Positions 19,813-64,000 of a stretch of DNA of 64,000 nt are shown here, piece after piece. The notes beneath the pieces were generated by a model. It was not told where the DNA came from, did not search any database, and saw only the letters and a list, made by a program, of their open reading frames with translations. How positions within the stretch are numbered: position 1 is the first letter of the stretch; every line of letters starts with the position of its first letter. The stretch is from Octopus bimaculoides (taxonomy: Eukaryota): NCBI RefSeq assembly GCF_001194135.2, contig NC_068997.1:46162698-46226697 (forward strand), in the 5' to 3' direction. Both the position numbers and the translations under genes were made by a program.

Positions 19813-19846
<34 letters not shown>

Positions 19847-22650
19847 TATTCTTAATGCTATCTTTATGTTCTTTCACACTTTTCAGGTTGGAGAGAATGA
19901 AACTGGAGAAAATGAAGCTGGAGAAAGAGAAACTATTAAGATACAGAATGGAAAAAGAACTTTTTGAAATGGAAAGGCGTGATGTAGAGATGCATTCAGC
20001 TGAGATGTTGCGGTGAGTGAGACAGGTTATGCTGTAAACTTAATGATTAATTTTTATCTGTAGAATTTAAAGTAGATAAAGCCATAAATAACAGCATGTA
20101 AATATTGGGTTAGGAACCCCTTTTGGATTTTTCTATCTGAAAGAAGCCCGTCGTATATAAGTATGTATGTGTGTGTATATGTTTGTCCCCCCAGCATCGC
20201 TTGACAACCGATGGTGGTGTGTTTACGTCCCCGTAAGTTAGCGGTTCGGCAAAAGAGACCGATAGAATAAGTACTAGGCTTTCTGATCTTTGTTTTCTTC
20301 TAGGTATAATGTTGGACTACATTATCCAGTGCATCCAACATTTTGTTTTTCTTCCAAGACAGTTGGGGATGATTGGAGGATGTTTTGGTTGCTGTTTCTA
20401 GTATGTTTAATGACTGCATGGCGTGTTAGCTCAACTGGTGTCCTGGTTGTTAACTTGTTGAAAGTTAAGGTTGTTTACTATTTTATCATATCCTTCAGCT
20501 GCTAATTACTTGAATTTACTTTTTTTTTTTCTAACATCAGGTTTGATGAAATGAGACATCCTTCAAAAAGATCTCATGATCGAAGTAGCCTACGTGATGA
20601 TGACCTCTGGGATGAACGTAAACGGTCCAGGATGAGTAGTTCCGGTAACCCCTCTAGATTTGAACTTCCTTTCCGGAATGAATCACGGTAAGTTGCCAGT
20701 GGTAGAGACAGTATTTTGTCATTGATTTCTTGTTACCTCACTAATGTTCTAAATTAAAGTTTCTTTTGCATTTCTCAATCTTTTGGCCTCTGAATGTGGT
20801 ATGTGCATTCTTATATATTTTTTACTCCTTCCCCGCACCTCCTTTTTTTTTTTTTTTTTTTTCTCACATGTTTCAGTTCAGTCAACAAACTGCGGCTTGA
20901 AGGTTTCAGCTATATAAATTGTCTCTTGCACTTGTTCTGTCTCTGTCTTTTGCGGAACTGCTAAGTTATAGGGACATAAATAAATACTGTCAAGCAGTGG
21001 CACTCTGTCGCTTACGACGTTGAGAGTTTCAGTTGATCCGATCAATGGAACGGCCTGCTCGTGAAATTAACGTGCAAGTGGCTGAGCATTCCACAGACAC
21101 ATGTACCCTTAACATAGTTCTCGGGGATATTCAGCGTGACACAGTGTGACAAGGCTGACCCTTTGAATTACAGGCACAACAGAAACAGGAAGAAAGAGTG
21201 AGAGAAAGTTGTGGTGAAAGAGTACAGCAGGGTTCGCCACCACCCCCTGCCGGAGCCTCGTGGAGCTTTAGGTGTTTTCGCTCAATAAACACTCACAACG
21301 CCCGGTCTGGGAATTGAAACCGCGATCCTATGACCGCGAGTCCGCTGCCCTAACCACTGGGCCATTGCGCCTCCAATGTCAAGCAGTAGGAGGGAACAAA
21401 CATAAACACAAAGACACACACGTGCGTACGTACGTGTGTGTGTGTGTTTGTGATGGGCTTCCACATAGTTTGTCTATTTAATTCACTTGGCCAAGGTTCC
21501 ACACAGTAGGACTGAACCAGAAACCACATGGTTGTAGAGTGAGCTCCTTAACCACACAGCTACACCTGTGCCTATATTTGTCCAGTATCACGACATTGTT
21601 GTCCACTATATACTCTGAGTTGGTTCCATCTTAAAAGTGAACAACGATTATTTGCCCAGCTTCTACACATTGTCCTTTTACGATGGTTCTAAACCCTTAG
21701 GAAATAATTTTGCTAATTTTGTATCTTATTTATCTCTCTTTCCAGGATGCCTTTTGAGTTAAGAAGAGATATGGGACCAAGTGGGGATCCTGATAGAAGA
21801 TATGTTGGTCCCGATCGAGGACGTGATCACGACCGACGAAATATATCAGCTCATGATAGATTGGGAAGAGTGAGAAATTCTTTTGGTAAGCTTACACTTG
21901 TTTTAATCATTTTCACTTTCCCTCTCTCTCGAATAAAACCTCACCCCCATCCTCCACTTTTTGGTAGCTGTCCCTCTCTATTTTTTTTCTTTTAACATTT
22001 AAGCATTGAAATCGGCCACATTGGGCCCAAATATTCTACCTGTTTTATGTTCATCCAGATCTAGGTTCTCACACCTACTCTACAATGTCATTATCAAAAT
22101 ATAGAATCACATCATCAAAATCTCAAACCTACAAGATAATGCATGATTAATTCAAAACCAGGTAAATAAAGAAACACTACTTTTGACTGAGTAATCTGAA
22201 TGCTAAAGGGTTAAGCCCTATTCTTCTGTGTATCCATCTATCTTGCTATTAATCAACATTCTCCTTGTTTATTCTTTCTCTTATACAATTCTTTTAACTC
22301 TTTATTTTTCATATTTGTGTGTCATTAACTAATATGTTTTCTATGTTTTCTTCCTTCTAGGCGGTGGACCTGACCAGAGACCTCCTTGGGGTTCTGGCAG
22401 TGTAGATAGGAAAATGGACAACTGGTCTCACATGCATGGAGACATGGACCAACCGAATGAACCGTGGTTTGGTAACCCTATGGACAAAACAGGTCGTGAT
22501 GCCAGTGGGGCATTTGTTGACAATAATAGACCCGGTAACAGTGGTGGGGTGGGGCAGAACTTGGGACCTAATAACATGTTTGGCAACTCACAGTCGCGTG
22601 GTGGGATCATGATGGTTACACACGAGGGTGGTAGTGGGGGTGGTATATGA
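3646..22650 (+). CDS. SAFB: Scaffold attachment factor B (SAFB/SLTM)-like protein: SAP domain, RRM, charged coiled coil, G/N/M-rich C-terminus
   Basis: Phase-consistent GT-AG exons: 3646-3780, 7027-7060, 11407-11911, 13715-13755, 13895-13989, 14881-15030, 15243-15330, 16281-16465, 17389-17552, 19253-19378, 19887-20012, 20541-20687, 21746-21885, 22361-22650 (2226 nt, 741 aa). SAP: [37 protein letters not shown]: [76 protein letters not shown], nearly identical to the SAFB RRM. The LSFDQIK motif is also present. One exon after the SAP exon may be hidden in an N gap. Confidence 0.93.
5030..5960 (-). mobile_element. Degenerate Ty3/Gypsy-type gag-protease fragment in a SAFB intron
   Basis: Minus-strand translations [17 protein letters not shown] (gag-like) and [27 protein letters not shown]...TVEDRDFRA (retropepsin-adjacent region); broken by stops and frameshifts. 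Confidence 0.55.
9520..10330 (+). mobile_element. Decayed Tc1/mariner (maT/DD37D-like) transposase
   Basis: Fragments [53 protein letters not shown] and [16 protein letters not shown] follow maT-type transposases in order; many stops. Confidence 0.7.
13895..15030 (+). CDS. SAFB: SAFB-like RRM exons (13895-13989 and 14881-15030)
   Basis: RNP2 (LWVSGL) and RNP1 (RCYGFVTM) motifs with canonical splice sites. Confidence 0.95.
14110..14690 (+). mobile_element. Degenerate CR1/Jockey-like LINE ORF2 fragment (endonuclease-RT linker)
   Basis: [25 protein letters not shown] resembles the DPS..A..IT..I..GM..YIP linker of Jockey/CR1-group LINEs; frameshifted downstream. Confidence 0.5.
18670..20040 (+). 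repeat. Local tandem duplication of about 630 bp containing a SAFB coding exon, plus a partial third intronic copy
   Basis: The motif tatatcaagag(g/a)cttttcttta...gtagattc recurs at about 18710, 19017 and 19600; exon copies are at 19253-19378 and 19887-20012. Confidence 0.9.
20998..21374 (-). mobile_element. tRNA-derived SINE, near full length
   Basis: Minus-strand head GGCGCAATGGCCCAGTGGTTAGGGCAGCGGACTCGCGG...GGTTTCAATTCCC with A and B boxes; its 3' tail is shared with the copy at about 57645-57960 (+). Confidence 0.8.
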
Positions 22651-26038: not shown

Positions 26039-26829
26039 GTGGAAACTACATTTTATTTTCTGGGCTGAGATTCGAAACCGTATCTAAGAATTTACGCTCT
26101 CACGATCCACCACTGGCCGAACAAGCGCGAAAGAAATTTTTTTGTCCTGTCAAAAAGTGATGGATGAGTTGCCACTCGACCTCCGACCTGGCTGTGTCAC
26201 AGAAAGTTCAGCTGGACAACAAGTGACCCAGATAAGTACAAACTATTCCTATGGTATATCCATCCTAGCTTCAGTTTGATTCCCACCACTTCACCGAGCT
26301 CACTCGTCTTCTCGGCTGTAAACACACCCGCACAACAGCGTACCACTCAGCAGCAAATGGCATGTTCGAAAGCTTTCACCGCCAACTTCAGGCGGCTATC
26401 AAAACATATCCAGACTGCTCCAACTGATTGGAATATCTTCCACTCATCTCCCTTGGTACCGGATACACAGTTAAGGAGGGAGTTGGACATATTCCGGCTG
26501 AACTGGTCTATGGCACGGCACTCGTCTTACATGGGCAGATGATCGACCCTCTTTCACCACAAGAGTTTCCAGACCTAGCAAAATGTGTTCATCGATTACG
26601 GACATCCATGTTGCATTTGTCCCCTGCAGGCCCCAGACAACAGAACGTCACTTCACATGTCCAAAGGACATCAATACTTGGACGGATGTTTTCGTCAGAA
26701 ATGATGGAATATCTTATCGACTTTGGCCACCATATTCCGGGCCCTACAAAGTAACCCACAAAGAACCAAAGTATTTCGTTCTTGATATTAGCGGAAACCG
26801 AAATACTGGCACTGTTGATCGCTAAAAAA

Positions 26830-26870
<41 letters not shown>

Positions 26871-28085
26871 CATTCGTGGAACAGGATTTACTATCAGTTC
26901 CCACCATTCCCCAAACCGACTCAACAACGTCAGCTTCAGCCCTCGCAAACACCTAAGATTCTGCACAACGCCGGCACACCAAATCGGGAAGAACAGTTCG
27001 ATTGCCCGCAAGATATGTTCAAGTCTTTCGGGTAAGTACAAATTCTTCAGCTACCCATCATTTCAATTGAAATGTCCATATCAACGAGTTTTTTCTAAAA
27101 AAATAAAGAGAACTTTTTCATGGTTATGAACAATTACCCTTCACATAACCCAAGAGACTATCAACATTGTTCTACTGATTGAACATTTAACCAACGAACT
27201 TTGGTACTACTAAAGCAGCGCGGACCCGAACGCGCAGTCGCGCGTCCGCGCTAGCTAGTCGTGAGTGGTCGATCCTAACCCTAACCCTAAACACGTATTC
27301 ATTTGCACACGCGGGTTAGGGATAGGGTTAGGGTTAGGGTTAGGGTTAGGATCGACCACTCAAGACTAGCTAGCGCGACTACGCGTTCGGGTCCGCGCTG
27401 CTTTAGTGCTTTAGTAGTACCCGAACTTTTTGGATGAACATTTTCATTTCTATGTAAAATTATATTTTGCTTTGTTTTAAAAACGTTTTGTTCTATGTAT
27501 CACACCTGCATACTTACACCACTCATATTTTCATGTGTGCTATTACTTAGCACACTTTCCGCGCTATTGAAAGACAACTTACCTCTATTAGACCTCCAGT
27601 GGGTCGCGTAATCAATAGAATTGCATATCTCTTTCAACGCGCCAGCATATTACATCTATGTTTCTACTTAGGCTATGCATCACCTAGCATATAATTCACA
27701 CACCAACTCTGAACGTTGATTTTTTGCTTTACATTTTTTTCACTTCACGTTTTTGGCATGTATTCATTTGTTTGTAAATGACTGGATATACATTTTGTGC
27801 ATTACACACCAAATCATGCATTTTCAATTTCACACGTATCTGTATCGTTCGATCTCTGGTTTTCTCACTGGAAGTGGGGTAATGTGGAAACTACAGTTTA
27901 TTTTCTGGGCTGAGATTCGAAACCGAATCTAAAAATTCCTGCTCGCACAATCCACCACTGACCGAACAGGCGCGAAAGAAATTTCTTTGTCCTGTCAAAA
28001 AGTGATGGCTGTGTCACGGAAAGTTCAGCTGGACAACAAGTGACCCAAATAAGTATAAACTACTCCTATGGCATATCCATCCTTC
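26039..28085 (+). mobile_element. Internally deleted Ty3/Gypsy LTR retrotransposon: 5' LTR fragment, integrase C-terminus, 3' LTR fragment
   Basis: Direct repeats 26039-26265 and 27883-28083 both begin TGTGGAAAC, the second preceded by purine-rich gaagtggggtaa. Between them lie PAELVYGTALVLHGQ and WPPYSGPYKVTHKEPKYFVLDISGNRNTGTVDR, homologous to 48480-49060 (-). Confidence 0.8.
27203..27421. mobile_element. Merlin-like MITE (219 bp) with 8-bp TSD and internal telomeric repeats
   Basis: Long inverted arms GGTACTACTAAAGCAGCGCGGACCCGAACGCG... / ...CGCGTTCGGGTCCGCGCTGCTTTAG(TGCTTTAG)TAGTACC; perfect TSD CGAACTTT at 27195-27202 and 27422-27429. GG termini with an 8-bp TSD fit the Merlin superfamily. 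Confidence 0.75.
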
Positions 28086-40635: not shown

Positions 40636-41984
40636 CAGTTGTTACCTATCAATTGCCATGTGGAAGAGCAATGAATTTATATCCAAAATTGGGAGGAAAG
40701 CCCTTTGGAGTAAGTCAACTTTTACTCACATCTGATGGAACTGAAGAAGAAAACTTCAGGGTAGAAGACTTGATTATGGCTTTTCATAAAATGATAGCAC
40801 AATTGACTGACTTTTCATGAATTCTATCACTTAAGTGTGGTTTCGTCTTGGTGGGAAGGGTCACACATATTTAACCTGCTGTTAATAGGAGAACATGCAG
40901 CTTTCTGTGAACAGGAAGATGTGTGTGATTTTACCTTAACAATGGAAAATCCCTATCCAGGGAGATCTCCATCAATAGCAGTGGAAGGTAAGGTGAGCAT
41001 TCCTCTGTATTTATGTTGGTATTTTGACTGTGGGGAGTGCTGAGAGGTTTTTTTTTGGTATGGGTTTTGTATCAGGGCCTGTTGGTCTTGGTAGTGGTGA
41101 TGATGATGCTTCTGTATTTGTTGCTTTGGATTTTGCTGTTGTGTTTGAGGTGTTGGCAATGAAGGCACTTCTTCCTTTCGATCTTTGTTCTGGGAAGAAA
41201 ACCCTTAAGCGCTTAAAAGTACCACATAATGTACAAATTTGATGTATTTTCATGTATGTGACTTAAGAAATAATGAAATTATCAAAAGATGAGAAGTGAA
41301 AAATCTTGCATAAATGTAGGACACAGCTTTTGGCTACAACAAGAATAATCTCTATAGAGAGCTGAATGCTGGGGTTTCTATAAGCTGACTAAAAAAATTC
41401 TAGAACATTCCATAAAACCTTTACATGTGAAAATTAAGTTTTTCTTTTTGTCTGTCAAAAACTGGCATCAAAGATTGGCTATCAAATATGTTGGTTGGTA
41501 TTATAATAGAGTCCAGGGATATAGTCAAAATTAATTCCACTTGACATTATCAAATATTGTAATCATCATCAACATTGTTTGACGTCCGCTTTCCATGCTA
41601 GCATGGGTTAGACGATTTGACTGAGGACTGGCGAACCGGATGGCTGCACCAGGCTCCAAGCTCATTGTTCACTAATAGTAATTATCTCAGGTCAACATTA
41701 TCAAATATAATCATATTAGTCACCAACAGTTTTGACTTTTAAACTTACAACATTCCAAGTTTGAATTCAAGGAAGTTCTCTCTGCTACTGTATTTGTATG
41801 AATTCTTCCTAAAAGTATGTATTTGTGGCTCTTTTCTTAGCTTCCTCTTCCTTAAGGCATATGGCTACAACCATTCCATGACATTCCTCTCCTTACATTC
41901 CATATCAAAGCACTGACATCTTTCAAACATTTTTTGGCCTTTATCAGGGCTGGATTGTCTACTTTTAAGAGTTTTTATATATAT

Positions 41985-43360
41985 GTAACGGTTTATGAAT
42001 AATAACTTAGAACATTCAAAAAAAGATATGCACATGAATTTAGCAGCTTTAGTGAAATGAGTCGTCGCAGAATTTGTGCATCACAGAATGTGTACATTGC
42101 GGAATATGTAACTCTTCAACAAATAAGTGTGCAGTACAAACAGAGCAATACAGTAAGCAAAAATAACAAACTTAGCTGAAAATAGCGTCCTTTGTGAAAA
42201 ATCTACTGCTGAAAGTGAAAAGAAGTGCATGCAAAGAAAAAGAGTTGTTGAAAGTCTATGTGAGAGTCTTATGCACGTGCAAAAAAGATCATATACAATG
42301 CAGGGCCTGTATGCCAGGACGAGATGCAAAGTGTGTGTGTGTGTGTCGAAAAGGTTGCATGTGCGGGCTTCCGTATTTTCTTCCAGTTAGTTTCTGGGCA
42401 TGTAGCTGTCGAATTGATGCATTTATCAGCGGCATTCGTTGTGCGTCGGCTATATTGCATTGTTGTGATGTGCATCGCAGTGTAGAGCTTTTTGTAGCAG
42501 GTCGATGGAGGGTGCATGTTGGTGGTGACGAAGGTTGTCATTAATTTTCCCTTTGGTTTAGCGACTGTTGTTATTTCGTTCGAAGTCAGCAAAAATGCAG
42601 AAGGTAGTAATTCTTTCGCTCTGGGTCGACAGTTGTGACTGTTGGTAATGCAGTTTCTGAAGGCAGCGGTTCTTTTTTTACGGGGTCACCAAGTTGTTGG
42701 TAATTCAGCTTCAGAAGGCAGTGATTCTGTTTTTTTATGGGGTCACCACTTGTAACGGTTTTTGTAGGAAGGTTACCAATTGTAACGATAAATTGATTGG
42801 TTGCTATTGCAGTAATTCTCTTGTTCAGGTTCACCAATTGTACGATAATGTTTTTGTGGTTGTGATGATAATTTTGTGTAGTTACCGATTGTAACAGGTT
42901 GTAAGATGAACGATGAACAGTGATCGAAGTTGTAAAGAAATATTTATTTACCGTTATGTTAATAAATGCCATACCATGACGGGTAGGTTAGAGTAACAGT
43001 ATAACACAGTTCGTAAAGCATGCAAGGTAAAGAAAGTCGATTTCGGCCTGTATATGTGTGTACACGATTTTGTGGTATTAAACAGATAAAGATAGGGTAA
43101 TGTTAGCGAGAAAAGGGAATGAGCTAGTCAAAGTTGTATAGTGTGGGACGTTGTCTCACAGTGGCTGCCAGTAAACTTCATTTCTCCCTCTGGCCAAGGT
43201 TCTAGCTGGTCAGCCAGACTGTGTTGTCACTGAGTCGTCACCGACTAGTGACTAAACTGGTTGAGTCATCACCGACTGGTGACTGAACTGTTGAGTCGTC
43301 ACCGACTGGTGACTAAACTAAATTTTTCTTGGGATTTCCTTGCTTTTATAACAATCCAGA
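41985..43360 (-). mobile_element. LTR-like segment with TATA box, 31-bp repeats and PBS array, followed by a non-coding internal region ending in an LTR-end motif
   Basis: On the minus strand: TTATAAAAG at about 43345, repeats at 43231-43320, AATAAA at about 42945, repeated CGTTACA-TGGTGACCC units at 42620-42900, and a terminal CCGTTACA at about 41985. Confidence 0.55.
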
Positions 43361-43369
43361 AGGATAGCT

Positions 43370-46350
43370 ATCCAGCCTGATATACCAAAGCGTGACAGAC
43401 TGATTCAGCGGAGATGTCTGCAAAGGGAATGGCTTCAGGCTGTAGTGGAAAAGGTGTAGCAAAAGATATTGCGGTAGCAGATGAAATAGGCATGTGGACA
43501 ACTTCAGAGTAAAACAATGGGAAAACATTGGGTTATAGTTCAAAATAATTTATTTAAACGACTCTTGCATTTACTTGTTGTATACACCAAAAATTTCACT
43601 ACATCACATTACCAACTGTTTCAAGCTGGCAAAGAAATTAACAGGATAAATACTGTGTTGATGTGATAGGGTAGAACTGGACGTTTTGTGTCTGTGTGTG
43701 CATTGGTCATTCAGTAGTGTGTGTTTTTGTTCTTCGACTACGACTGTCATTCATGTTGAATATCCGTCTGTGTTGTTCAGGGACATATGGGTTCTCGTGT
43801 CCTGTGGAAACATCACACCATATTTGACCGGTTGAAGAAGATAGTGGGCAGAGTTGGAATTTGAGGGACGATGAATTTCGTAACTTATTAAGTTCTTCGT
43901 CGTCCTCTTGGTCCGCTGCGATCTGCTGTAACTCAATCGGTTCCGAAGTATGCAGTGCATTAAGATGGGCGCGGGACAAGGTGTCTGCGGCCGTGTTATC
44001 GGAACCTTTAATGTACCGAATATCAGTTGAATATTGAGAGATAAAATCAAGGTGACAGATTTGTCTCGGAGAATGTCAGTCATTCTTCGTTTTAAAAGCA
44101 TAAACCAGTGGTTTGTGATCTGTGTAGATGCTGAAGGCAGTCCCCTCAAGCATATGGCGAAAATGTTTAACAGAAAGGTATGCAGCGAGTAGTTCTTGTC
44201 CGAAAGTGCTGTATTTAACTTCTGCGGGCTGTAGTCACTTGGAGAAGAAAGATAGTGGTTGCCAAATTCCATCTACAAACTGTTGCAGGATGCCGCCGAT
44301 TCCAATCTGAGAGGCATCGACCAGTAATGCGAGTGGAGCATCATGTTTGGGATGAACTAGCATCTTATGACAGTGTCGATGAAACGCTGAAATGTTTGTG
44401 CCCTATTTCGTAATCCAAACGGCATTCGCAAGGATTGATATGCACCAAAAGGAGTGGCAATTGTGGTTTTGGGGACATCGGCCGGTTCAACGGGTATTTA
44501 TTGTAGGCCCGAATTAAATCTATTTTGGAGAAAATCCGTGTTCCGTTCAGCGAAGCAGAAAAGTCCTGCAAGTATGGTACGGGATAAGTGTCAACCACTG
44601 TAGCTTTGTTGAGAGCTCTGTAATCTCAGCATGGACGCCAACTGTTTGTTTCCTTCTTAGGAACTAAATGAAGGGGGCTGGACCAACTGCTGTTCAACGG
44701 TTGAATGATCCCTAGATCTAGCATGTGCTGAAATTCCTGCTTTGCTATGCGCTAGCGGTCTGGGGGCAGTCTTCTCGGTCGCAATGCTACTGGTGGGCCT
44801 GTGATCTTGATATGATGCATGATGCCATGTTTAATCTCGGTGTTTCTAAATACCGGTCTTGTGATATCCGGAGACTGGCGAAGAACATCCAAGTAACGTC
44901 CAGTGTGGGGAGATAGAACGATTGATCCGACTGTGGGTATTCGTGCGGTAATGCTGTGCACAGTTAGATTGGTGGTGCTATCTACAAGTCTGCGTCGTTT
45001 AACATCGACCAAAAGACCAAAGTGGTGTAGAAAGTCGGCTGCTATTATTGGTGTTGGTAATTTGGCAACAACGAAAATCCACTGAAATACTCGTCGAACA
45101 CCTAAATTCAGAGTCAAGGACTGTTTGCCAAAAGTCTGAATGGGAGACTGGTTAACTGCTTGGAGAAAAGTTGGCGTCTGTTTCCTGTGGCCTGAGGTTA
45201 GTGAAACGGGGAGGATGCTACTCTCGGCTCCGGTATCCATGAGAAAACGGGTACGTGAAGTACGGTCGTGAATATACAACAGACGACTTTTGTTGACTCG
45301 GCCAGGTACGTTCGTCATCCTTATGTCCTGGCTTGGTCGTTTCCCGAATTATGAGGGATGTTGATTTTGTATGAGCAGGGTGGCTTGCATGAACGTGCGT
45401 GCTTTCCGAATTTCGTGTGGTAGAAGCATAATCCGGAACAGCGAGTGGCGTCTAATAAAATGCCGGTATGGACTGTGGTCACGAGACGAACGGTCATGCA
45501 CTATTAACTCCTGCAACTGTGCTGCAAGTGTCTGGATCTGTGCAGGCTGTTGCACTATTAACGCGCGTAGTTCCAACATCTCAGAGGATTTCGGAAGGTT
45601 GGTGAAAGGGTTGGTCGAAGATGCTACTGGTGTAACGGTAGCAAAGGGGTTTGTCGACTCAGTAATTCTATCGGCCATTTCTGCAAGTTCCTCTATGGTG
45701 GTAGATTCCTTCGTCAATGCCAAAATGACTTGCGTGTTAGCAGGCAATCGCTTAACGAAAATCTGTTTCAGGATGCGATCTGGGAGGTTGTTGTCTCCGA
45801 GCAACTGTCGCATCCGGCGTAATAATTGTGATGGGGTTTTGTCCCCCAATTCCTCGGAAATCAAGAGTTGGTGCAATCGCCATTGCTCCGACTCGCTTGT
45901 CCTTTTTATCAGCTCCGATTTGGAAGGTTCATAAGACACAGAACCTGGTGGGGCCATGACGAATTCCCTCACTTCCATCATAATTTCTGGCGACAGAGCG
46001 TCGATTAAATGAATTAATTTCGCCGTATCTGTGGTTACGTGGTTGGAGGCAAACTGTGCTTCGATGTGAGCAAACCAGAGGGTGGGGTCAAATGACCAAA
46101 ATGGTGGCACTCTTAATGAAATAGCAGCTTGGGGAAGCGCCAGATCGCCAGAAGATGATGCTGGGTCTTGATTGGTCTGATGCATGTATAAACAGGTGCT
46201 TTTTTAAAAATATTTTTTTATAAATAGAATTAAAGTTTTGTTTGCTGTAAAGTTATAGGTAAATGTGGCTGTCCATCACAAAACCCAAACCCATTTTTCT
46301 TAACAGGGTCAACAGATATAAGATATTTGGTTGAAGTCGAGGGTCACCAG
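43370..46350 (-). mobile_element. Dead Ty3/Gypsy unit: PBS, gag, protease, partial RT, RNase H, partial integrase
   Basis: PBS TGGTGACCC at 46349-46341. gag ORF 46185-45349 (VPPFWSFDPTLWFAHIEAQF...EELGDKTPSQLLRRM). Protease FLMDTGAESSILP. RT DTYPVPYLQDF...FSKIDLIRAY, then a jump from FQRFIDTV to RNase H (APLALLVDAS), so the YxDD core is deleted. Integrase PEAIPFADISAESV at about 43430. Confidence 0.9.
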
Positions 46351-46439
46351 ATATAAGGTATTTGGATTCTGCCACGGAGGAAGCCGATGTTCAATTTACG
46401 TGTTTGCTGACTATACTGTTTTGGTGTCTCTCTTGTTTA

Positions 46440-48470
46440 TAATCAGGTGTAGAATTGGTCCCTGTCAACGATATGGCCGAGGAAAGGCAGAGATGAGACA
46501 CCAAAAATACATTTACTGGTCTTGATTAAGATGCTGTAGTCAGCCAACCACTGGAATACTTGATCTAAATGCTTTTCATGTTCGGCTTCGGATTTGCTTG
46601 CTACCGATATATTGTCGATGTTCGCATACACGAATGGTAAGCCCCTAAGTTACGGTATCCATAAAACGCTGGAATGTCTGCGCTGTGTGATGGAGACCGA
46701 AGGGCATCTGCAAACACTCGAATAGCCCGAAGGGTGTGGCAATTGCCGTTTTTGGAACATCTGCAGGTTCAACGAGTATCTGGTTGTAGGCCCGCACTAG
46801 GTCGATTTTAGAAAAAATCTGTGCTCCGTTCAGTGAACGAGAAAAATCCTGCAAGTATGGAATCGGATAAGTATCGGCCACTGTAGGTTTGTTGAGGGCT
46901 CTGAAGTCTCTGCATGGATGCCAGCCGTTCGTCTCTTTCTTAGGTACCAAATGTAGCAGACTGGACCAACTGCTGCTGGATGGTCGAATGATCCCCAGAT
47001 CTAACATATGCTGAAATTCTTGTTTAGCGACCCACAGGCGGTCTGGAGGCAGTCTTCGCGGTCGTGAGGCAACAGGTGGGCCGGTGGTTTCGATATGGTG
47101 CGTAATCCTGTGCTTGATATCCTTGTGTTTGAACAGTGGTCGGGTGATGTCCGGATATTTACGGAGGAGCGCTTCGTATCGGCTGGTCTCTGTACGTAAC
47201 ATGACTGGACCTACTGTGGACATACGTGCGGTTATACCACGTACAGTGAGGTCAGTTGTTGTATCGACAAATCTACGTTTCTTCACGTCGACCAGGAGGC
47301 AGGAGTGGGTAAGTTTACTATGACGAAAATCCACTGGAAAGCGCGACAAAGGCCTAAATTTAACGTGAGGGATTGCTCACCAAAAGTCTGGATGGGTGAT
47401 TGATTAACAGCCTGAAGAAAGGCCAGCGTTTGTTTTTTGTGTCCCGAGGTTAGTGAGACGGGGATGATGCTAACTTCAGCCCCAGTGTCCACAAGAAAAC
47501 GGGTACCTGTAGTACAATCCATTATGAAGAAAAGGCGACTCTGTTTACCTGCGCCAGGAGCGACCGTCACCCCTAAAACCTGGCTTGGTCATTTTCCGGG
47601 CCAGCGGGAGTATGACTGTGGAAGGAACAGGGTGGCCTGCAGGAAAGTGTGTTTTTGCCGTATTTCCTGTGGAAATAGCAAAACCGAGGAAACCGCCAGT
47701 TGACGCTAGGGCTCCTCGAACATCTTCTATGAAAGCATCGGGGTTGGTTGCCCTTGTGCGGTGAGCGGCTGCGACATGTCAGCCCATGCAATTGCACCGA
47801 GAGTGTCTGAATCTGTGCTGCCTGTTGAGCCAGGAGTACACGTAGTTCCAGCAGTTCCGAAGAATCCGAAGAAGCAGCAAAAGGATTGGTGGAAGATATT
47901 GGCGCCATTGTCGAGAAGGGGTTGGCTGCCTCAGCGATTTGATCCGCTATCTCGGCCAGTTCATCGACAGTGGCCGACTCTTTTGTAGATGCCAGAATCA
48001 CTTGTGCATTGGCAGNNNNNNNNNNNNNNNNNNNNNNNNNNNNNNNNNNNNNNNNNNNNNNNNNNNNNNNNNNNNNNNNNNNNNATATCTGTTTGAATAT
48101 CCCGTCTGGCAAGGTGCGATCACCTAACAGTTGTTTCATCCTTCGTAATAGTTGAGACAGAGTTTTATCTCCCAGCTCTTCGGAAATTAAGAGTTGGTGT
48201 AGTCGCCATTGCTCTGAGACGGAGGTCCTTTTAATCAGTTCGTTCTTAAGTGTCGTAAGACACGGAACCTGGTGGGGCCATAATCAAGTCCCTGACCTCC
48301 ATCATTATTTCAGGAGAAAGGTCACCAATTAAGTGCGTTAATTTCGCTGCATTGCTCGTTATTCTATTCGCAGCAAACTGAGCCTCGACGTGGGCGAACC
48401 AGAGGGCTGGATCGAAAGACCAGAAGAATGGCAATTTTATGGAAATTGCGGCCTGTTATGTGTTGATGTA
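46440..48470 (-). mobile_element. Second Gypsy unit of the same family: gag, protease, RT (truncated)
   Basis: gag PFFWSFDPALWFAHVEAQF; protease FLVDTGAEVSIIP; RT ORF 47349-46645 (LGIIRPSSSSWSSLLHLVPKK...FSKIDLVRAYNQI...MPFGL...FQRFMD). The catalytic motif reads IDN instead of IDD. Confidence 0.9.
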
Positions 48471-49370
48471 GGCATTCATGTAAGAAGCTGGGTAGGTTAA
48501 AAGTTGGGACTTACCCGAAAAACTTGCACAGACCAGCGAACAATTCTTCCCGATTTGGTGTGCCGGGGTTGTGCAGAATCTGTAGTGTTTGCTGGGGTTG
48601 GTGAATCCGTTCGAGAAACGGAGGGAACTGAATGTAAGCCCTCCTCGATGAAGGCTTTTTTCAGACGATCAATCGATACTGTATTTCGTTTACCTCCGAT
48701 ATCGAGAACGAAATACTTGGGTTCTCTTTTGATGACTTTGTACGGCCCGGAATATGGTGGCTGAAGTTAAGATGGTATGCCATCGTTTCTCACGAAAACA
48801 TGAGTCCAAGTGTTGATATTCTTTGGAACATGTGAAATGACATTCTGTTGTCTGGGGCCTGCAGGTGACAAATGCGACATGGATGTCCGCAATCGGTGCA
48901 CATATTGTGCTGGGTCAGGAAGGTGTGATGAAATAGGTTCGATCATCTGCCCAGGTGAGGTGAGTGCTGTGCCATAGACGAGTTCTGCTGGAGTATGTCC
49001 AACTTCCTACTTAACCGTGGATCGAATACCAAGTAGGATGAGGGGGAGATTTTACGGAAATTGCAGCCTAAGGCAGTGCCATGTGTACAGAAGAAGAGGA
49101 TGCAGGCGTGTCTTGCTCCGGAAAGTGCATATATAATAAAAAAGGTGGTGGTAATTTCTCTTTACACGGGGTCACCAAGTTGTTGGTAATGTAGCTTCAG
49201 AAGGCAGTGGTTCTTTTTTCATGGGGTCACCAATTGTAACGGTTAGCTTTTAATTGTTGTAGTGATTTGTATTATGATGCAACGTCGAGATCGCCAGTTT
49301 GTAACGATAAAGTTTTTAGTTGATGTTGAGGGTCACCAATTGTAACGGTTAAGGTTACCAGTTGTAGTGG
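48470..49370 (-). mobile_element. Non-autonomous Gypsy unit: PBS array, gag stub fused to integrase C-terminus
   Basis: After the last PBS (49177-49168), MHFPEQDTPASSS..AAISV is joined directly to LPLILLGIRSTVK.EVGHTPAELVYGTAL and PPYSGPYKVIKREPKYFVLDIGGKRNTVSIDRLKKAF. Confidence 0.8.
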
Positions 49371-49384
49371 GAGAAATTTGATTT

Positions 49385-51300
49385 GTAAACATAACCATGC
49401 AATAACCTCCACGGTGTGGTACCATAGATTTGCATGTAGTTTCTCTTTGACAATAGGTATTATCTTGTCTAAAATATTTTTGCTGATTCTTCCGAGGTCG
49501 GATTTTGTAGGGCATATTAAATGAATAGATGGTTTTGTAATGAAATCCTTCTTGTGATCCTTGAGGTTGAAGTGTGGCGGTGTGGGGCAGTACGGTTCTG
49601 TTCTGTCGTCCACGTTTAGCTTCCTCATGATTTTCGTATTCTACCACTCCTAACTTCGAATCTATTATAGCAACTTCTAATAACTATAAACTTACGCAAC
49701 CATAACTACGCTAGCGCCAACACCCGACCCACACATACACCCAACACGGACATTAATATACGTTCTTCTAACAATAACGCTCGTACACTCGAACAAAACC
49801 ACGGTAGATCCCAACCCATTAATATTCTCGATAATAATAATGATAGGACAAATAGCTATAACAATAATTCCATTGATCTAGATTCTTACACATCCCCCAA
49901 TAACATATCCTCCAATAGTAATACCTCACCCACCAACGGACACCACTCTCAAGTCTCCTATACTTGTAACTGTCGCTCCGTGACTATTTGTCCACTTCAA
50001 ACACATTGCGTAAGATACAACGTAATATATAAATGCACCGTGAGAAATCTATTACATAACTCTACAGCTACATACATAGGTGCAACTAAAAACTTCAAAC
50101 ATCGCTACGCAGCCCATTTGCACTCTTTTAGATATGACAAACACAGTAAATCTACAACATTAGCCAATCACATTCATCACCTCAAAAGCACAAATACCCA
50201 ATATACTTTANNNNNNNNNNNNNNNNNNNNNNNNNNNNNNNNNNNNNNNNNNNNNNNNNNNNNNNNNNNNNNNNNNNNNNNNNNNNNNNNNNNNNNNNNN
50301 NNNNNNNNNNNNNNNNNNNNNNNNNNNNNNNNNNNNNNNNNNNNNNNNNNNNNNNNNNNNNNNNNNNNNNNNNNNNNNNNNNNNNNNNNNNNNNNNNNNN
50401 NNNNNNNNNNNNNNNNNNNNNNNNNNNNNNNNNNNNNNNNNNNNNNNNNNNNNNNNNNNNNNNNNNNNNNNNNNNNNNNNNNNNNNNNNNNNNNNNNNNN
50501 NNNNNNNNNNNNNNNNNNNNNNNNNNNNNNNNNNNNNNNNNNNNNNNNNNNNNNNNNNNNNNNNNNNNNNNNNNNNNNNNNNNNNNNNNNNNNNNNNNNN
50601 NNNNNNNNNNNNNNNNNNNNNNNNNNNNNNNNNNNNNNNNNNNNNNNNNNNNNNNNNNNNNNNNNNNNNNNNNNNNNNNNNNNNNNNTGTCCTTGGTTTG
50701 TCACCCATACCCCACCACCTATATACTACCTCTGCGCATTCCTTCTTCCTCACTAAACCATTTAACCTCATCCCCCCTTCCCTCACAATACTCATCTTCT
50801 CTGTCCAGTCAGATTAACTGACCACAAAAAATATACCACTACCATTCCCCACCGGAATCTTTCCTCTATCATCTTCCCATTGTGTCTTTAAGACTTGACC
50901 TATTTACCCTACACACATCTCTCACTTGACTTGGGACATCCTTCAAGTAAACACAAGCAATATACCTCGGTCACAATATGGCATATATCCACCTGTGCTA
51001 TTTCAGCCTTTGCTGTAGCAACTATTTCCGGAAAATTCCCACAAGGGTTACTTTACACGGATACTTACTACTGGAATGAAACTACACTCCAAGTACTGTT
51101 CTTTCTTTCTTTCTTTTTTCAGCGCATCACACTCACTCTCACTTCATACTATAACTCTCCGCCTATGGATATAATAATCGATTCCTTTACTATTTCTGTC
51201 TCCGATAAAGGGAAGTTTTGGATCTTCCCAGAAACAGCTGTAAGACTCTATCCATAAAATATATTTCCAACTTTACCATTGCTCTCTTTATCTTTTTATA
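49385..51300 (+). mobile_element. Penelope-like element: inverted RT fragment (49640-49385, -) abutting GIY-YIG endonuclease (about 49650-50210, +) and 3' region
   Basis: Minus strand: HFNLKDHKKDFITKPSIHLICPTKSDLGRISKNILDKI...NLW...EVIAW (PLE RT N-terminal motif). Plus strand: TCNCRSVTICPLQTHC..YNVIYKCTV...TYIGATKNFKHRYAAHLHSFRYDKHSKSTTLANHIHHLK (PLE GIY-YIG). Confidence 0.85.
51198..51246 (+). ncRNA. Degenerate type I hammerhead ribozyme of the Penelope-like element
   Basis: GTCT-CCGATAA-A-GGGAAG(TTTTGGAT)CTTCCC-A-GAA-ACAGCTGT-A-AGAC: stem I GTCT/AGAC, stem II 6 bp, palindromic stem III, GUA cleavage triplet. The core differs from CUGAUGA at two positions. Confidence 0.65.
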
Positions 51301-51820: not shown

Positions 51821-52480
51821 GGGGTCACCAAAATGTGGTGGAGTAATGTTGTATGTTTGTTTTATCGTGTCAGGGTGCGATAGGCATGTGTTTGCCTGTG
51901 AATAAACAAAGTGATAACTATGTTCAACCATAACATATTTTATTTGCTGCATTGAACTCTGGTGTTAGTAAATATTCTTCACCACTACATTAAATTTTGG
52001 CAACTTACTTCGAGTTGCTAGGAAAAATGAAACCAGGGTACATCTGTGGAGTTGATGTATCCGAAGACTAAATATGTTCATGTGTGTGTGTGTGTTTTTG
52101 TTCTTTCATCTTGCGGTAGTTCTCTCTCTCATTAGCATGGCATGGCAAATCTCTGTGTGATAGTCGCGGAGCACTGGGTCAGTCTGTGGCGAATCACAGT
52201 CTCTGTCCTCCCTGCTAAATTCTCCTATCTATAAAAATCAGGGGTAGCTAGAAGGATGGACATGCTGCAGCAGGTTTAGCACCTAAGTAGGTCAGTCGCT
52301 GTCCAGTGAACTTCGCTTGACATCTATGAGGTTATAAGGTCGAGGGGAGTCTATCCATCATTTTTTTTGACAAGACAAAGAAAACCTGATTTCGCACCTG
52401 TTGCTCACAGTAAATCCGACAAGGGAAAATTCTTAGATTCGGTTTCGAATCTAAGCTTGGAGAAGGGAAATGTTAGTTTT
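51821..52480 (-). mobile_element. Gypsy LTR (about 650 bp) plus tRNA-Trp-type PBS; same family as the 26-28 kb LTR fragments
   Basis: The minus strand starts TGTAAAAAC after purine-rich GTAGGGGCATA, shares AGATTCGAAACCGAATCTAA and TGTCAAAAA..TGATGGAT...CTCGACC...GAAGTTCA.CTGGACA with 26065-26230, and ends ...CCACCACA followed by TTTTGGTGACCCC. Confidence 0.75.
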
Positions 52481-58600: not shown

Positions 58601-61600
58601 TGTTCAGTCCAGAATTATAGCAGAAGACACCTGCTCAAGCTGCTGTACAGTGGGATTGAACCTGATAAAATACAGGAATGCCTTTGGTCATAATTTTGCT
58701 AGATCAGGACTGACCTATGCTTAAAAAGACCAATAGCAAAATCTTTAAATTAACTCTGTTATAAGAGCTCAACTAACGTTAACCCCTCTTTAGCATTAGA
58801 AAACTACAAGTGAAAAACAGACTTACTGTTCTTCATGTGGGGGTTTGAAAACCTGAGAGAGACTGATGGCTTCCATGGTGATGCCCAGGGGTCAGTGAAC
58901 ATGCGGAAGGTACATTGGCGAGAGGTCAGCAAGGGTAGTAGAGGACTCACATCTGTTACCCAAATTCCAATACGCCTAAAAAGTGGAGAGGAGAAAAGAA
59001 TGTAATAAGAAAATAATATGGGTTTACATGTAATATGCATATAAAGACATTCGAGCGAGATTGTTGCCAGTGCCGCCAGACTGGCTCCTGTGCAGGTGGC
59101 ACGTAAAATACATCATTTTGAGCGTGGCCGTTGCCAGTACCGCCTGACTGGCCTTCGTGCAGGTGGCACATAAAAGCACCCACTACACTCTTGGAGTGGT
59201 TGGCATTAGGAAGGGCATCCAGCTGTAGAAACTCTGCCAAATCAGATTGGAGCCTGGTGTAGCCATCTGGTTCACCAGTCCTCAGTCAAATCGTCCAACC
59301 CATGCTAGCATGGAAAGCGGACGTTAAACGATGATGATGATGGTCTGATCAAAAAGTACCAGGACCACTAGTAATAGAGCTAAAGTACACAGAGTGAAGC
59401 TGTTTGGCACTGATTGACCTTGAACTCTGTCATGCATGCACATTAAATAATAACATTCTTGTTCACTTCTGTTGTTTATAGCAGTACTTGGAAGCAGTGT
59501 AGTTATCAGAATTGCATGTGTCCAGTGAGAGGCAGCTCTACCATGACAAAGCACCTACCCATTCAGCGCAGTTTTTCGCCAAGCACAACATTCCCCATGT
59601 TCAACAACCACCATACTTCCCAAATCTTTCCCTTCGTGACTTTTCCCTCTTTCCAAAGCTCAAATCCCACTTGAAAGGGATGCGACGAGGTAGCTGCTTG
59701 CTATCCTCCAAAAAGGAGTTCCAGGAATGCTTCTATCAATAGAAACAATGTGTGGCTTCAGAAGGAGACTACTTCGAAGGTAATTATAGCACCAATCCGG
59801 ATACTTTTTGATCAAGCCTCATATGTATACACCTGTCTCTGTGTTTAGCAAGTTTCTTTTCAACTATGTGGTTTAGGCTGAGTTCTTCACCAGGGGATGC
59901 TGCCATCATCATTCTCATCCATCATCATCATCATCGTCGTTTTAATGTCCACCTTCCATGCTAGCATGGGCAGGACAGTTTCACAAGAGCCGGCCAGGCA
60001 GTTTATTTGTATGTGTGTATGAATATATATTTCTGTGTATGTTTATACCTTCATACATATATTATAAATGTATGAATATGTTTCATTTGTCAGTTTTTAC
60101 GTGTCTGCATTTGTATGTTTTATCTGTTTGAGCATATGTGCAAGAGCATGCAAGCTAAAAATTAACAGTTCCTTTGTGCAAATGACAGAATTTTCAGAAC
60201 CTTCAAACCCATGTGAACATGAATATACAAAAAAAAACGAATCAAGGAAAGAAAAAAAAAAAACCCCCAAGGTAGTGTGGTAAGAAGCTTGCTTCCCAAC
60301 CACATGGTTCTTGGTTCAGTTCCACTGTGTTGTACCTTAGACAATTATTTTCTTCTATAACCAAAGCCCTGTGAGTTCATTTGGTAGACAAAAACTGAAA
60401 ATGGCCCATCGTATATATATATGTATATGTATATATCTATGTGTGTGTACCTTTGTGCTTTTTGTTTGTCCTCCACCTCCACTTGACAGCAGTTGTTGAT
60501 GTGTTTACATCCCTGTAACTTAGCAGTTCACCAAATAGACACCAATAGAATAACTGCCAGGGTTAAAAAGAAATAAGTCCTGGGATTGATTTGTTAGACT
60601 AAGACCCCTCAAGGTGGTGCCCCAGGATGGTTGCTGTCAAATGACTGAAACAAGTAAAAGATAAGAAAAGAACGAAAAATAAAATACCTGCGGAATGGTG
60701 TGATCCATCGTCCTAGTTCCATGTTGCACAATGGGGAAGACTGATTGCAGCACACATGTAACCCAACAGTGCGGTCCCATGCAGGGCAGTCTTCATCTCT
60801 GGTGCCAGGACAAGACAGGTTCACTTGTAGTTCAAAGGTTGAGTAGGTTCTCAACTCTGGAATGATAAAGGACATAGGGGGAGAACATGGAGATTAACCC
60901 TTAAGCATTTAAACTGGCCATATCCGGCCCAAATACTCCACTTATTCTATATTTAAACCAGCCAGAACCAGCCTCTCATACTTACCCTATAATGTTATTC
61001 TAAAAATATATAGTCATGTCATTGAAAATTATTTGAAACAAAGTCATTGTATTTCAACTGAAATATGGCACCAAAAGGGTTAACTTTGATCACAGAAACA
61101 ATGGCAAATCAGTGAAAAGACATGTTTGTGAAATACCTACTTTCCAAAGGTGGTAATGTAACATTGGCAATAATTCCACTTTTGCCTTGCATTGTGGCAT
61201 TCTCAAATAATGGCACAAGAAGGTCTTTGTTCCAGAGTCTTCTCTCGAGTTTATTTTGAAATTTCATCCTGAAATATTGAATTTAGAGAAGTGACATTCT
61301 TACAAATAATGGTAAATTATAATACATACACAGACAGGGACACATATACACACACACTGATGGATGGGCTCACCTACTCATACACACATTGACAATAACA
61401 CACACACACACACACACTAAAAGACGCATGGACAGACATAATTCACATACACACACTCACATTAACAAATACTCATACAGAGGGTGGGGAGACAGACATA
61501 CTCATTACATACATTAATACAAATACAAATGGACAGATACACACACACACACACACACACACTTGCACTGATGGATGGGCAGACATACTCATACATTCTT

Positions 61601-62478
61601 TTCTACTCTAGGCACAAGGCCTGAAATTTTGGAGGAAGGGGCCAGTCGATTAGATCAACCCCAGTATGCAACTGGTACTTAATTTATCGACCCCGAAAGG
61701 ATGAAAGGCAAAGTCGACCTCAGCAGAATTTGAACTCAGAACATAAAGACAGACGAAATACCACTAAGCATGCTAACGTTTCTTATTTCTTTATTGCCCA
61801 CAAGGGGCTAAACATAGAGGGGACAAACAAGGCCAGACAAAGGGATTAAGTTGATTACATCGACCCCAGTGCGTAACTGGTACTTAATTTATCGACCCCA
61901 AAAGGATGAAAGGCAAAGTCGACCTCGGCGGAATATGAACTCAGAACGTAGCGGCAGACGAAATACCACTAAGCATTTCGCCTGGTGTGCTAACGTTTCT
62001 GCCAGCTCACCACCTTTACTCATGCACACATTGACACAAACATACACAGGACGAACAGACATGTGCATTGATACAGACACATATACTCACACATATATGC
62101 ATTTGCATTAATACATGCACACACACACACACATACACTGACACATACACACATAAACGGCTGAAGAGACACACACACACACACACATCAAAACATGGAC
62201 ATAGATCTTGAAAAATTATTACAAAATATCAAATTAAAATAATTACATAAATATTCAATTAAAATTAAATTTAGATGGGAAATAATAACTATAATAAATG
62301 TAATAAAATAAACATAAACCATGTCAAAATGCACACTCACCATTCTGCTTGCCATACCAAAAAGTTTGCTGATGGATACAACATCCATCCAGCTTCTGTC
62401 AGTTTACCTAATGAATCAATGGCCATGTAGAAATTTTGTGATGGTGTGTTCTGGAATTTTATAGTTGATGGACCATTG
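55689..62478 (-). CDS. PNGase F-type peptide-N-glycosidase (N-glycanase) family protein, 3' seven exons; gene continues beyond the window
   Basis: Phase-consistent minus-strand exons 62478-62341, 61268-61141, 60856-60688, 58975-58827, 57424-57303, 56144-56021, 55936-55689 (358 aa, stop TAA). Motifs: FQNTPSQNFYMAID..G.L.EAGWMLYPS..FLVWQAEW, LSCPGTRDEDCPAWDRTV, ELGRWITPFRRRIGIWVTDVSPLLP, VITGHGSDENGCGEFC, GTWLYGRDGWCDG. Tentative further exons at 64000-63956 and 63693-63602 do not yet phase with 62478. Confidence 0.88.
59338..59823 (+). mobile_element. Internally deleted mariner element with both TIRs
   Basis: TIRs tgatcaaaaagtaccagg / ccggatactttttgatcaagcctcata; transposase C-terminus LYHDKAPTH...PPYFPNLSLRDFSLFPKLKSHLKG...FQECF...CVASEGDYFEG. 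Confidence 0.85.
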
Positions 62479-64000
62479 CTGTAGAAAACAGAACAGAGGA
62501 TGAGATGAAAATGAAAATTATTTAGACACATTTTCCACCCCTTAATTTATGCATTATTTATATCTGTATAATCATCTTCATCACCATTTAATGTCTTTTT
62601 TTTTCAGGCTGGCATGGGTCAGACGATTTGATAAAGACGGTAAGCCAGAGGACTGCACCAAGCTCCAATGTCTGCTATGACACTGTTTCTACAGCTGGTT
62701 GCCCTTCCTAATGCTAACCACTCGACTGAGTGTACTGGAACTGGGTGCTTTTAACATGGCACTAGTACCAGTGAGGTCACTAAGTAATTCACAAGACAAG
62801 ACACCCTCAACTGAGGAGGTGTAGTATTGAGGGAGGAGGGGGCTTTATAAAAAGAAAAGGTAAACTTACTTTCTCAAGTCATGCTGACTAGTAAGGGCTG
62901 GTTTCCTGGTTTCATGGCATAAGGGCTGGTTTCCTGGTTTCATGGGACACTGGTCCATTACAGGATTACTCATTTTTGCCAGCTGAGTGGACTGGAGCAA
63001 TGTGAAATGAAGGGTTTTGCTCAAGAATACAACCTGTTACCTGATCCAGAAATTGAAATCACAATATTTCAATCATGAGTCCAACACCCTAACCACTAAG
63101 CCACACACCTCCATGAGGGGTCAACCCTTTAGTATTTAAACAGGTCATATCTGGCCCAAATATTCTACCTGTTTTATATTCAAACTAGCCAGATCTGGCC
63201 CCTCACACCATGCCTACAGCATCCTTTTAAAGATAAACAGTTACCTCATCAAAACCTCAAAGTTACAAGGTAATGCAAGATTAATTCAAAACATGTGAAT
63301 AATTAAGCATTACATGTGAACACTAAAGGGTTAAAGTATGATAGACAGACAGAAACAGGTGTCTTGCTCAAGAAGAGATACATGGCTACCCCATATTTAT
63401 ATTTATATAAATTAATCAACATGATAAATAAAATGCGAATGATGTGTAGATAGACTAATGGTGAAAAAGAGAGCAAGGGAAGGAAAGAGAAAGAGAGAGA
63501 CATAAATTGAAGGACAGATAGGTATTTTATTTAACTGTCAAACATATAGATATATTTACAATAACATGTCATTTATTTATATGCTCTTTATAGAGAGTTA
63601 CATGTTCATGAGACGCACAGGAGTGGTTGGGTGGCTGGTAGTCAAAAGTACTCATGAAATGAGGTTCGTGAATAGTCAGATAGCTAATCATACCTGTGAG
63701 CAACTGTATGTAATAAAAGGCTGAGACTAATGCTGCAGAGGTGGGCATATTAGTACTTCTATTATGACATTAATCCACAGGTTCAAGTGTTAGTAACTCT
63801 ATCATGACACTAATCTATAGGGGGACATTTAGTCCTTTTATCACACTGATTTTAAATTTTAGCATAAAGCCAGCAATTTCGGGGTGGTGGGATAAGTTGA
63901 TTACTATTAGATGCAAGCTACCTCAACACACATCACACACATGGTGACTACTTACAGCTAGGTGGACTGGGTATGAATCTCAGCTGTGAACACAGCCAAG

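Follow-up and report, generated by a model that had tools for sequence, protein, structure and literature searches.

Long terminal repeat (LTR) retroelements are taught, and are annotated by software, as having one primer binding site beside U5. The CsRn1 clade of Ty3/gypsy elements is known by a primer site for the tryptophan transfer RNA (tRNA-Trp), a 4-bp target duplication, and a C-H-C-C motif in gag (PMC2582038), and members of the clade have been found in nine of 12 cephalopods (PMC6238403). Here we describe a 64,000-nucleotide (nt) stretch of the Octopus bimaculoides genome (contig NC_068997.1, positions 46,162,698 to 46,226,697), referred to below as the window and numbered from its first letter, in which the leader of an element assigned to this clade carries the junction of U5 end and primer site six times in succession (array 1). 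A second leader in the window has five such units (array 2), and a third, belonging to an element copy referred to as copy B, has two.

We consider it probable that array 1 is the 5' leader of a truncated and dead CsRn1-clade copy, in which a segment that otherwise occurs once was multiplied in tandem and later decayed. The array is an unusual variant of an ordinary element and most likely a by-product of its replication or duplication.

Array 1 and the LTR end from which it starts

Array 1 runs on the minus strand from position 42897 down to 42622 and consists of six units with a spacing of 30 to 60 nt (Table 1). Each unit has an LTR-end-like motif, followed after 1 to 2 nt by a 10-mer that resembles TGGTGACCCC; the motifs are, in order, CTGTTACA, CGTACA, CGTTACA, CCGTTACA, CCAACA, and GTCACA, and successive 10-mers lie 51, 58, 30, 57, and 60 nt apart. 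A first-pass annotation of this DNA had listed at least six minus-strand units with a period of about 30 to 60 bp, and our positions agree with its cores to within a few bases.

The combined motif TTACAANTGGTRACC, with ≤2 mismatches, matched eight times in 64 kb against 1.57 expected, a number reached in none of 100 shuffles. Seven of these eight matches fall in three short stretches, with four in 42741-42894 and three in 49225-49367. TGGTGACCCC with ≤1 mismatch matched 10 times in the window against 2.27 expected, and Tandem Repeats Finder reported a 55-nt period with 1.9 copies at 42640-42748, which corresponds to the two best units. It is thus confirmed that array 1 is real, the combined motif lying far above chance. 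Single 10-mers with ≤3 mismatches are common, at 81 to 92 per strand, as they would be if a short motif had clustered by chance in AT-rich DNA. However, the excess of the combined motif is concentrated in three leaders, and the array is in register with the LTR end and homologous both to a second array and to the leaders of relatives, so that chance is refuted as an explanation and its remaining probability is negligible. An open reading frame (ORF) of 128 amino acids (aa) that spans array 1 had no homologue and was judged to be spurious, and a scan of metagenomes for the unit returned 96 single matches on unrelated contigs and no arrays.

The array directly follows the 3' part of an LTR. Relatives with which the window was compared are designated by locus numbers; L001, the only other reachable copy of the subfamily to which the arrays belong, lies on another O. 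bimaculoides chromosome (CM046618.1) and has LTRs that are 99% identical. BLAST aligned window positions 43240-42930 with L001 positions 15396-15662, in its LTR (65.8%). The 3' LTR of L001 ends in ...AACCGTTACA and is followed by host DNA, and the window LTR aligns with it up to ...CCTGTTACA at 42890; beyond this point the window continues with AT and then the first unit, and the L001 flank and the window diverge after GTTACA. Since the alignment with the 3' LTR of L001 runs to GTTACA and then breaks off, array 1 begins exactly at the U5 end, and this homology at 42890 upholds the earlier proposal that each unit is a U5 end followed by a primer site. Within the LTR there is also a 30-nt tandem repeat of 2.9 copies (43231-43319, minus strand), with a GTCACC...GGTGAC inverted repeat in each copy. 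It sits just downstream of the TATA-like box at about 43340-43352, is present in one copy in the L001 LTR, and may be a multiplied hairpin at the transcript start.

At the other side of the array, the first-pass annotation had placed an element terminus at about 41985. This did not hold: the 600 nt upstream of that position match no LTR, and the 8-mer CCGTTACA, which occurs there, is found five times on the minus strand, with the copy within gag clearly due to chance. Nothing similar to the tail from 41985 to 42589 was found among the LTRs, elsewhere in the window, or in loci L001, L002, L004, and L007, and the tail was rejected as a candidate 3' LTR after Smith-Waterman comparisons against shuffles gave no LTR similarity. 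LTR pairs are present in relatives L001, L002, and L003; the array 1 copy has a single LTR, and its leader is followed by no coding region. Because the element stops just after the leader, array 1 now does nothing.

Single-site leaders and the nature of the spacers

In nine of the nine other leaders that were inspected, a single primer site lies 1 to 3 nt after the LTR end, in line with the premise of the first-pass annotation that LTR elements normally have one. These leaders come from O. vulgaris (L002 and L006), O. bimaculoides (L004 and L007), ENA assemblies (L003, L105, and L106), Strongylocentrotus purpuratus (L107), and the window itself (position 51830). The LTR end and single site of the last, which represents a third subfamily, occupy 51821-52120 on the minus strand, and the body of this element runs into an assembly gap.

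The units of the arrays are of two kinds. Long units, of 55 to 60 nt, comprise a U5 end, a primer site, and a leader start, and short units, of 22 to 35 nt, comprise only a U5 end and a primer site. For about 60 nt, the long units (units 4 to 6 of array 1 and units 4 and 5 of array 2) can be aligned with the start of the single-copy leaders of L002, L006, and L007; the spacer in these units is the family's normal leader, of which it holds the first ~45 nt. In array 1, the only sequence between the 10-mer of unit 3 and unit 4 is about 18 nt that look like a U5 end; in array 2, the 10-mer of unit 1 is separated from unit 2 by nothing but 10 nt of U5 end. Judged from its sequence, the array is a degenerate tandem repeat of a U5-end/primer-site/leader-start segment and not a repeat-spacer record of foreign DNA. 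The repeat-spacer structure proposed in the first-pass annotation therefore survives in part: the units are repeated, but the spacers are the element's own leader in the long units and do not extend beyond the U5 end in the short ones. Similarly, the comparison of spacers with leaders that it had suggested led to the leader start of the same family and to no foreign DNA.

Array 2 and variation between copies

Array 2 ends about 35 nt before a gag start codon. Over 91 nt, covering its last two units, it is 89% identical to array 1, and equivalent units across the two arrays (89%) are closer to each other than are adjacent units inside one array. Since matching units are more alike across arrays than neighbors are, the multiplication predates the split of arrays 1 and 2. 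Differences between the arrays include unit 6, which array 2 lacks; a 106-nt block, flanked by a direct repeat of 19 nt, which is missing from array 1; and the order of two blocks, which is rotated between the arrays. The unit number ranges from 2 to 6 across the multi-unit leaders. Both number and order of units thus vary between copies, and a fixed leader, which the first-pass annotation had named as the finding that would tell against its proposal, is not what we see.

The L001 assembly has a gap at positions 9527-9945 that covers the end of the 5' LTR and the leader. The implied leader length of about 268 nt, compared with about 115 nt in single-site relatives, is weak evidence for an array at this locus, gap lengths being estimates. 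A gap at the leader would be expected if internal repeats were present and defeated assembly from short reads.

It is conceivable that the repeats expanded as a minisatellite only once the copy was dead, through slippage during replication or unequal crossing-over in the host chromosome and with reverse transcription uninvolved; array 2 would then be a local duplicate, and no replicating element would ever have carried an array. The two arrays do lie in one rearranged 8-kb tangle in the same orientation, all nearby coding parts are broken, and no independent array-bearing insertion has been shown. However, matching units differ by about 11% and the arrays have been rearranged since, which marks the array as old, and the flanks of the two arrays are unrelated, with an LTR in one case and other DNA in the other upstream, and the tail in one and gag in the other downstream. 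The unassembled leader of L001, on another chromosome, has an array-like implied length, and copy B shows a like duplication independently. We regard an expansion after insertion as clearly improbable.

Duplication in copy B and the short units

Copy B belongs to another subfamily, which is ~70% identical and has LTRs ending in ...CTTATATC. The duplication in its leader is evidently an event independent of that in arrays 1 and 2. Homology between copy B and L004 (46357-46457, minus strand) begins only about 100 nt upstream of the primer site (TGATTATAAAC...CTTATA), which means either a very short LTR or a truncated one, and neither L004 nor the window yielded a second copy of this short upstream segment further downstream. 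A reading of the 9 nt that follow the first site of copy B as a copy of the tRNA T arm was rejected, as they do not fit the T-loop complement.

Duplicated junctions of this kind might also be primer-linked scars of replication, the short units having been made during reverse transcription. By one route, plus-strand strong-stop DNA would jump onto a short minus-strand product, carrying at its end a copy of the 3' end of the tRNA; by another, the second strand transfer would anneal out of register among site copies, and the unit number would change with replication cycles. A 10-mer that is followed directly by 10 to 18 nt of U5 end and the next 10-mer is indeed seen in units 3/4 of array 1, in units 1/2 of array 2, and in copy B, and the same junction has been duplicated in two subfamilies with different LTR ends. 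Furthermore, unit 3 of array 2 matches the tRNA-Trp complement at positions 10 to 15, past the usual 11 to 12 nt, and the first unit of copy B pairs over 9+4 nt. These observations come from only two independent events, however, and the extended match concerns one unit compared with a human tRNA, with a chance probability of ~0.01 after correction for ~13 units; the copy B extension does not read as a T-arm complement, and the long units are accounted for by plain tandem duplication. An origin of the short units as such scars appears unlikely to us. A wider form of the proposal, in which junction-only units are scars of primer errors, the multi-site leader gains and loses units by out-of-register strand transfer, and the arrays record how the clade handles its primer and might buffer against silencing at the primer site, seems similarly doubtful.

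Predicted pairing with tRNA-Trp

The reference was the complement of the 3' end of human tRNA-Trp given in bioRxiv 10.1101/400127. TGGTGACCCC plus G is identical to the first 11 nt of this complement, CCA included, and the complementarity claimed in the first-pass annotation is therefore present as a match of 10 to 11 nt to the human sequence. The site of the sea urchin locus L107 matches over 12 nt, and those of units 4 and 5 and of the relatives match over 10 to 12 nt. ARAGORN found no tRNA genes in the window or in six loci.

Duplex energies were predicted against the 18-nt 3' end of human tRNA-Trp, for which the window background has a mean of -5.8 and a 0.1% quantile of -19.9 kcal/mol. 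By this prediction, a pairing-competent site could have been kept in array 1 only by units 4 and 5 (two of the six), the other four lying between -6 and -16 kcal/mol. The energies of units 1 to 5 of array 2 are -10.6, -18.5, -21.8, -21.8, and -24.6 kcal/mol, four of the five being strong. RNA folding of the two arrays was no better than that of shuffles (z-scores of +0.78 and -0.36), and a search of Rfam at permissive thresholds gave no match over 40-53 kb. Locally, in the long units at 42682-42701 and 49168-49187 (minus strand), a hairpin of 7 bp can form between TTGGTGA of the primer site and TTACCAA, which lies upstream of it. GTTAC...GTAAC arms flank other units, and there is partial self-complementarity between the end of U5 and the beginning of the site.

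The additional sites could have been selected for a function, be it as a reserve of priming sites, as decoys that draw off 3' tRNA fragments or repressors binding the site, or as regulatory repeats such as those of gypsy-type 5' untranslated regions (5' UTRs). Four units of array 2 keep strong predicted pairing, regulatory 5'-UTR tandem repeats are known in other LTR elements (PMC3286476), and it is established that 3' tRNA fragments in the mouse repress elements through the primer site (bioRxiv 10.64898/2026.01.22.698655). However, four of the six array 1 units have decayed to near background pairing, the RNA structure of the arrays does not go beyond that of shuffles, and one site is enough for the nine other leaders, some of them young and with identical LTRs. 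A selected function is, in our estimate, very unlikely.

Origin of the arrays

Tandem multiplication in the leader of an ordinary element, the explanation that we prefer, could have proceeded as follows. Copies of the segment would have arisen by duplication between short repeats, through either template switching by reverse transcriptase (RT) or unequal recombination or slippage in the genome, and the multi-unit leader would have been inherited within one subfamily. As long as an element is live, minus-strand synthesis could start from tRNA-Trp annealed to whichever unit is intact, and the units upstream of that unit would simply be copied within strong-stop DNA; for this reason, extra units would be tolerated and yet not needed. 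Unequal exchange among units would later have altered their number and order, and annealing among several copies of the site would likewise add or remove units.

Several points weigh against this explanation. The match to tRNA-Trp rests on the human sequence and not on octopus tRNA-Trp. The boundaries of the short units coincide with the U5/primer-site boundary in two subfamilies, which random duplication does not predict. All three multi-unit leaders come from this one window, where only 6.5 kb separate arrays 1 and 2, which share one orientation; rather than being independent insertions, these two could have been copied in place, for example, as a tandem LTR-element-LTR-element structure. 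Finally, there is no readable third copy of the array subfamily, as the assembly gap in L001 falls exactly over the leader. Taken together, the array is real and unusual, yet only decayed copies at a single locus show it, and an ordinary explanation for it is available.

The element family and its broken coding pieces

Broken pieces of retroelements are tangled together on the minus strand between about 49400 and 42600 (Table 1). Pfam domains found in the window are the DUF7041 gag, a retroviral protease, and an RT, and the closest gag proteins are from O. bimaculoides and O. vulgaris. The pol of relatives has RT, RNase H, and integrase domains of the Ty3/gypsy type (Pfam RVT_1, RT_RNaseH, and rve; best matches named Ty3-type). 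The sequence C-x2-H-x9-C-x3-C ends the gag of copy A (ORF 47573-48139) and of relatives P0122-P0132, so that both show the CsRn1 arrangement of C-H-C-C in place of the usual C-C-H-C. L002, a young O. vulgaris copy, has 584-nt LTRs that are 100% identical, TGT...ACA ends, the 4-bp target duplication CCAT on both sides, and one primer site 2 nt after the LTR; the target duplication is seen in this relative, the window copies being truncated. Based on the C-H-C-C gag, the tRNA-Trp site, the 4-bp duplication of L002, and the pol domains, the element is assigned as a CsRn1-clade Ty3/gypsy LTR retrotransposon.

Copies in O. bimaculoides are 87 to 96% identical to those in the window. Copy A, of the same subfamily as the arrays, and copy B follow each other, and the pol of copy B ends at about residue 817 of 1081 (L002 pol), where the LTR of the array 1 copy begins. 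A C-terminal integrase fragment (48479-49051, minus strand) has 81% aa identity to residues 889-1077 of L002 pol, three stops, and no frame change between high-scoring segment pairs. It has the gag start downstream of array 2 on one side and the gag of copy A on the other, and a gag-start segment of about 25 nt is present on both of its sides. Another C-terminal integrase piece of the same clade lies on the opposite strand (26272-27043, plus strand) and has ~72% nt identity to 48462-49053. For ORFs directly upstream of array 2 (49272-49628, minus strand, and 49980-50210, plus strand), a Penelope-like element with an RT N terminus and a GIY-YIG-like motif was considered; it was not confirmed, Pfam giving no match. 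Dispersed and tandem repeat families D3-D10, at 18752-22645 and 60962-63292, are unrelated to the arrays.

Table 1. Features of the array locus. Positions are those of the window; on the minus strand, 10-mers start at the higher coordinate. Fractions give the identity of the 10-mer to TGGTGACCCC, and duplex energies are predicted values.
Feature	Position	Strand	Evidence or remark
3' part of LTR, from TATA-like box through U5, ending in ...GTTACA at 42890	42890-43352	-	Homology to L001 LTR; 5' limit uncertain, ~43352-43400
Array 1 unit 1: the LTR's own end CTGTTACA, AT, and decayed primer-site-like CGGTAACTAC (6/10)	42878-42897 (10-mer 42878-42887)	-	Duplex -6.1 kcal/mol, background level
Array 1 unit 2: ATCGTACAAT + TGGTGAACCT (8/10)	42827-42846 (10-mer 42827-42836)	-	Duplex -15.8 kcal/mol
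Array 1 unit 3, short: TCGTTACAAT + TGGTAACCTT (7/10)	42769-42788 (10-mer 42769-42778)	-	Duplex -9.6 kcal/mol
Array 1 unit 4: CCGTTACAAG + TGGTGACCCC (10/10); opens a long unit (primer site and leader start)	42739-42758 (10-mer 42739-42748)	-	Duplex -21.1 kcal/mol
Array 1 unit 5, long: ACCAACAACT + TGGTGACCCCG (10/10; 11 matches in a run)	42682-42701 (10-mer 42682-42691)	-	Duplex -22.7 kcal/mol
Array 1 unit 6, decayed long unit: CAGTCACAAC + TGTCGACCCA (7/10); not in array 2	42622-42641 (10-mer 42622-42631)	-	Duplex -12.4 kcal/mol
Leader remnant after unit 6; matches the stretch preceding the gag start codon downstream of array 2; element cut off here	42590-42621	-	Alignment of both arrays
Tail without shown membership of the element; CCGTTACA at 41984-41991	41985-42589		No LTR similarity
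Array 2: five units, 10-mer starts at 49360, 49338, 49296, 49232, and 49177; no LTR upstream	49168-49370	-	Collinear with array 1
gag-start fragment following array 2	49049-49131	-	87.6% to L001 9946-10034
Copy A gag, subfamily of the arrays; broken (one in-frame stop, one frame change); contains an assembly gap; keeps C-x2-H-x9-C-x3-C	47574-48455	-	89-91% nt identity to L001
Copy A pol, protease and part of RT; broken (two in-frame stops, two frame changes); ends at ~residue 416 of 1081, where copy B begins	46443-47681	-	Pfam RVT_1, tblastn
Copy B leader: two units, ...CTTATATC + TGGTGACCCT and ...CTTATATC + TGTTGACCCT, 35 nt apart	46305-46359	-	Only one unit at the corresponding place in relative L004
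Copy B gag, DUF7041; no stops in the part matching relatives, no frame changes counted; C-terminal C-H-C-C not recovered in frame	45349-46185	-	Pfam PF23055 (E 9e-24), tblastn
Copy B pol, protease, RT, RNase H, and integrase start; broken (11 in-frame stops, at least two frame changes)	43377-45429	-	87-96% nt identity to L004
In-window control: one site TGGTGACCCC, 3 nt after LTR end ...CCACCACA; third subfamily, as O. bimaculoides L007	51821-51830	-	Duplex -21.5 kcal/mol

Comparison with known systems

Literature searches for repeated primer sites returned no description of tandem units with a U5 end and a primer site, and to our knowledge none exists. If the extra sites are merely decayed duplicates, the arrays are a curiosity of one octopus family. 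The presence of the U5-end/primer-site junction in two to six copies shows that the standard layout can be multiplied and, probably, inherited, and the arrays are natural material in which the tolerance of strand transfer for repeated sites can be studied by sequence comparison. They also carry a practical warning for annotation and assembly, a close relative, L001, being gapped exactly over its leader.

Tandem LTR-element-LTR-element structures have been reported to be common in plants (PMC13570524). The octopus locus resembles them in having an LTR directly before a primer site and downstream of the coding region of another element in the same orientation. Such a structure would explain why two arrays lie 6.5 kb apart but not why there are several sites per leader. 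In Culex cqgypsy_1, of the Osvaldo lineage, a 26-nt direct duplication of the 5' LTR end flanks the sequence at the LTR/primer-site boundary (PMC3286476), which is similar to the duplicated junctions described here. However, that duplication has been attributed to an inserted head-to-head tRNA dimer (Twin-like), whereas the octopus array is without a tRNA-like insert, as judged by the negative ARAGORN and Rfam searches.

Leader repeats of gypsy and Mag-like elements lie downstream of a single primer site and are bound by host proteins. Array 1 likewise consists of head-to-tail repeats between the 5' LTR and gag, and it shares this location and a copy-variable repeat number with the gypsy insulator and with the Culex Mag-like elements cqgypsy_24, _25, and _66 (PMC3286476). 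It differs from them in that the octopus repeat unit contains the primer site and the U5 end.

The closest described relatives are the CsRn1-clade elements CsRn1, PwRn1, AgCR, and Kabuki, with which the octopus family shares the C-H-C-C gag, a tRNA-Trp site 1 to 3 nt after an LTR ending in ...ACA, the 4-bp duplication (in L002), and the pol order of protease, RT, RNase H, and integrase. The published members, as far as the available parts of their descriptions extend, and the nine relatives have one primer site, whereas in the octopus leaders described here, the junction segment is present two to six times.

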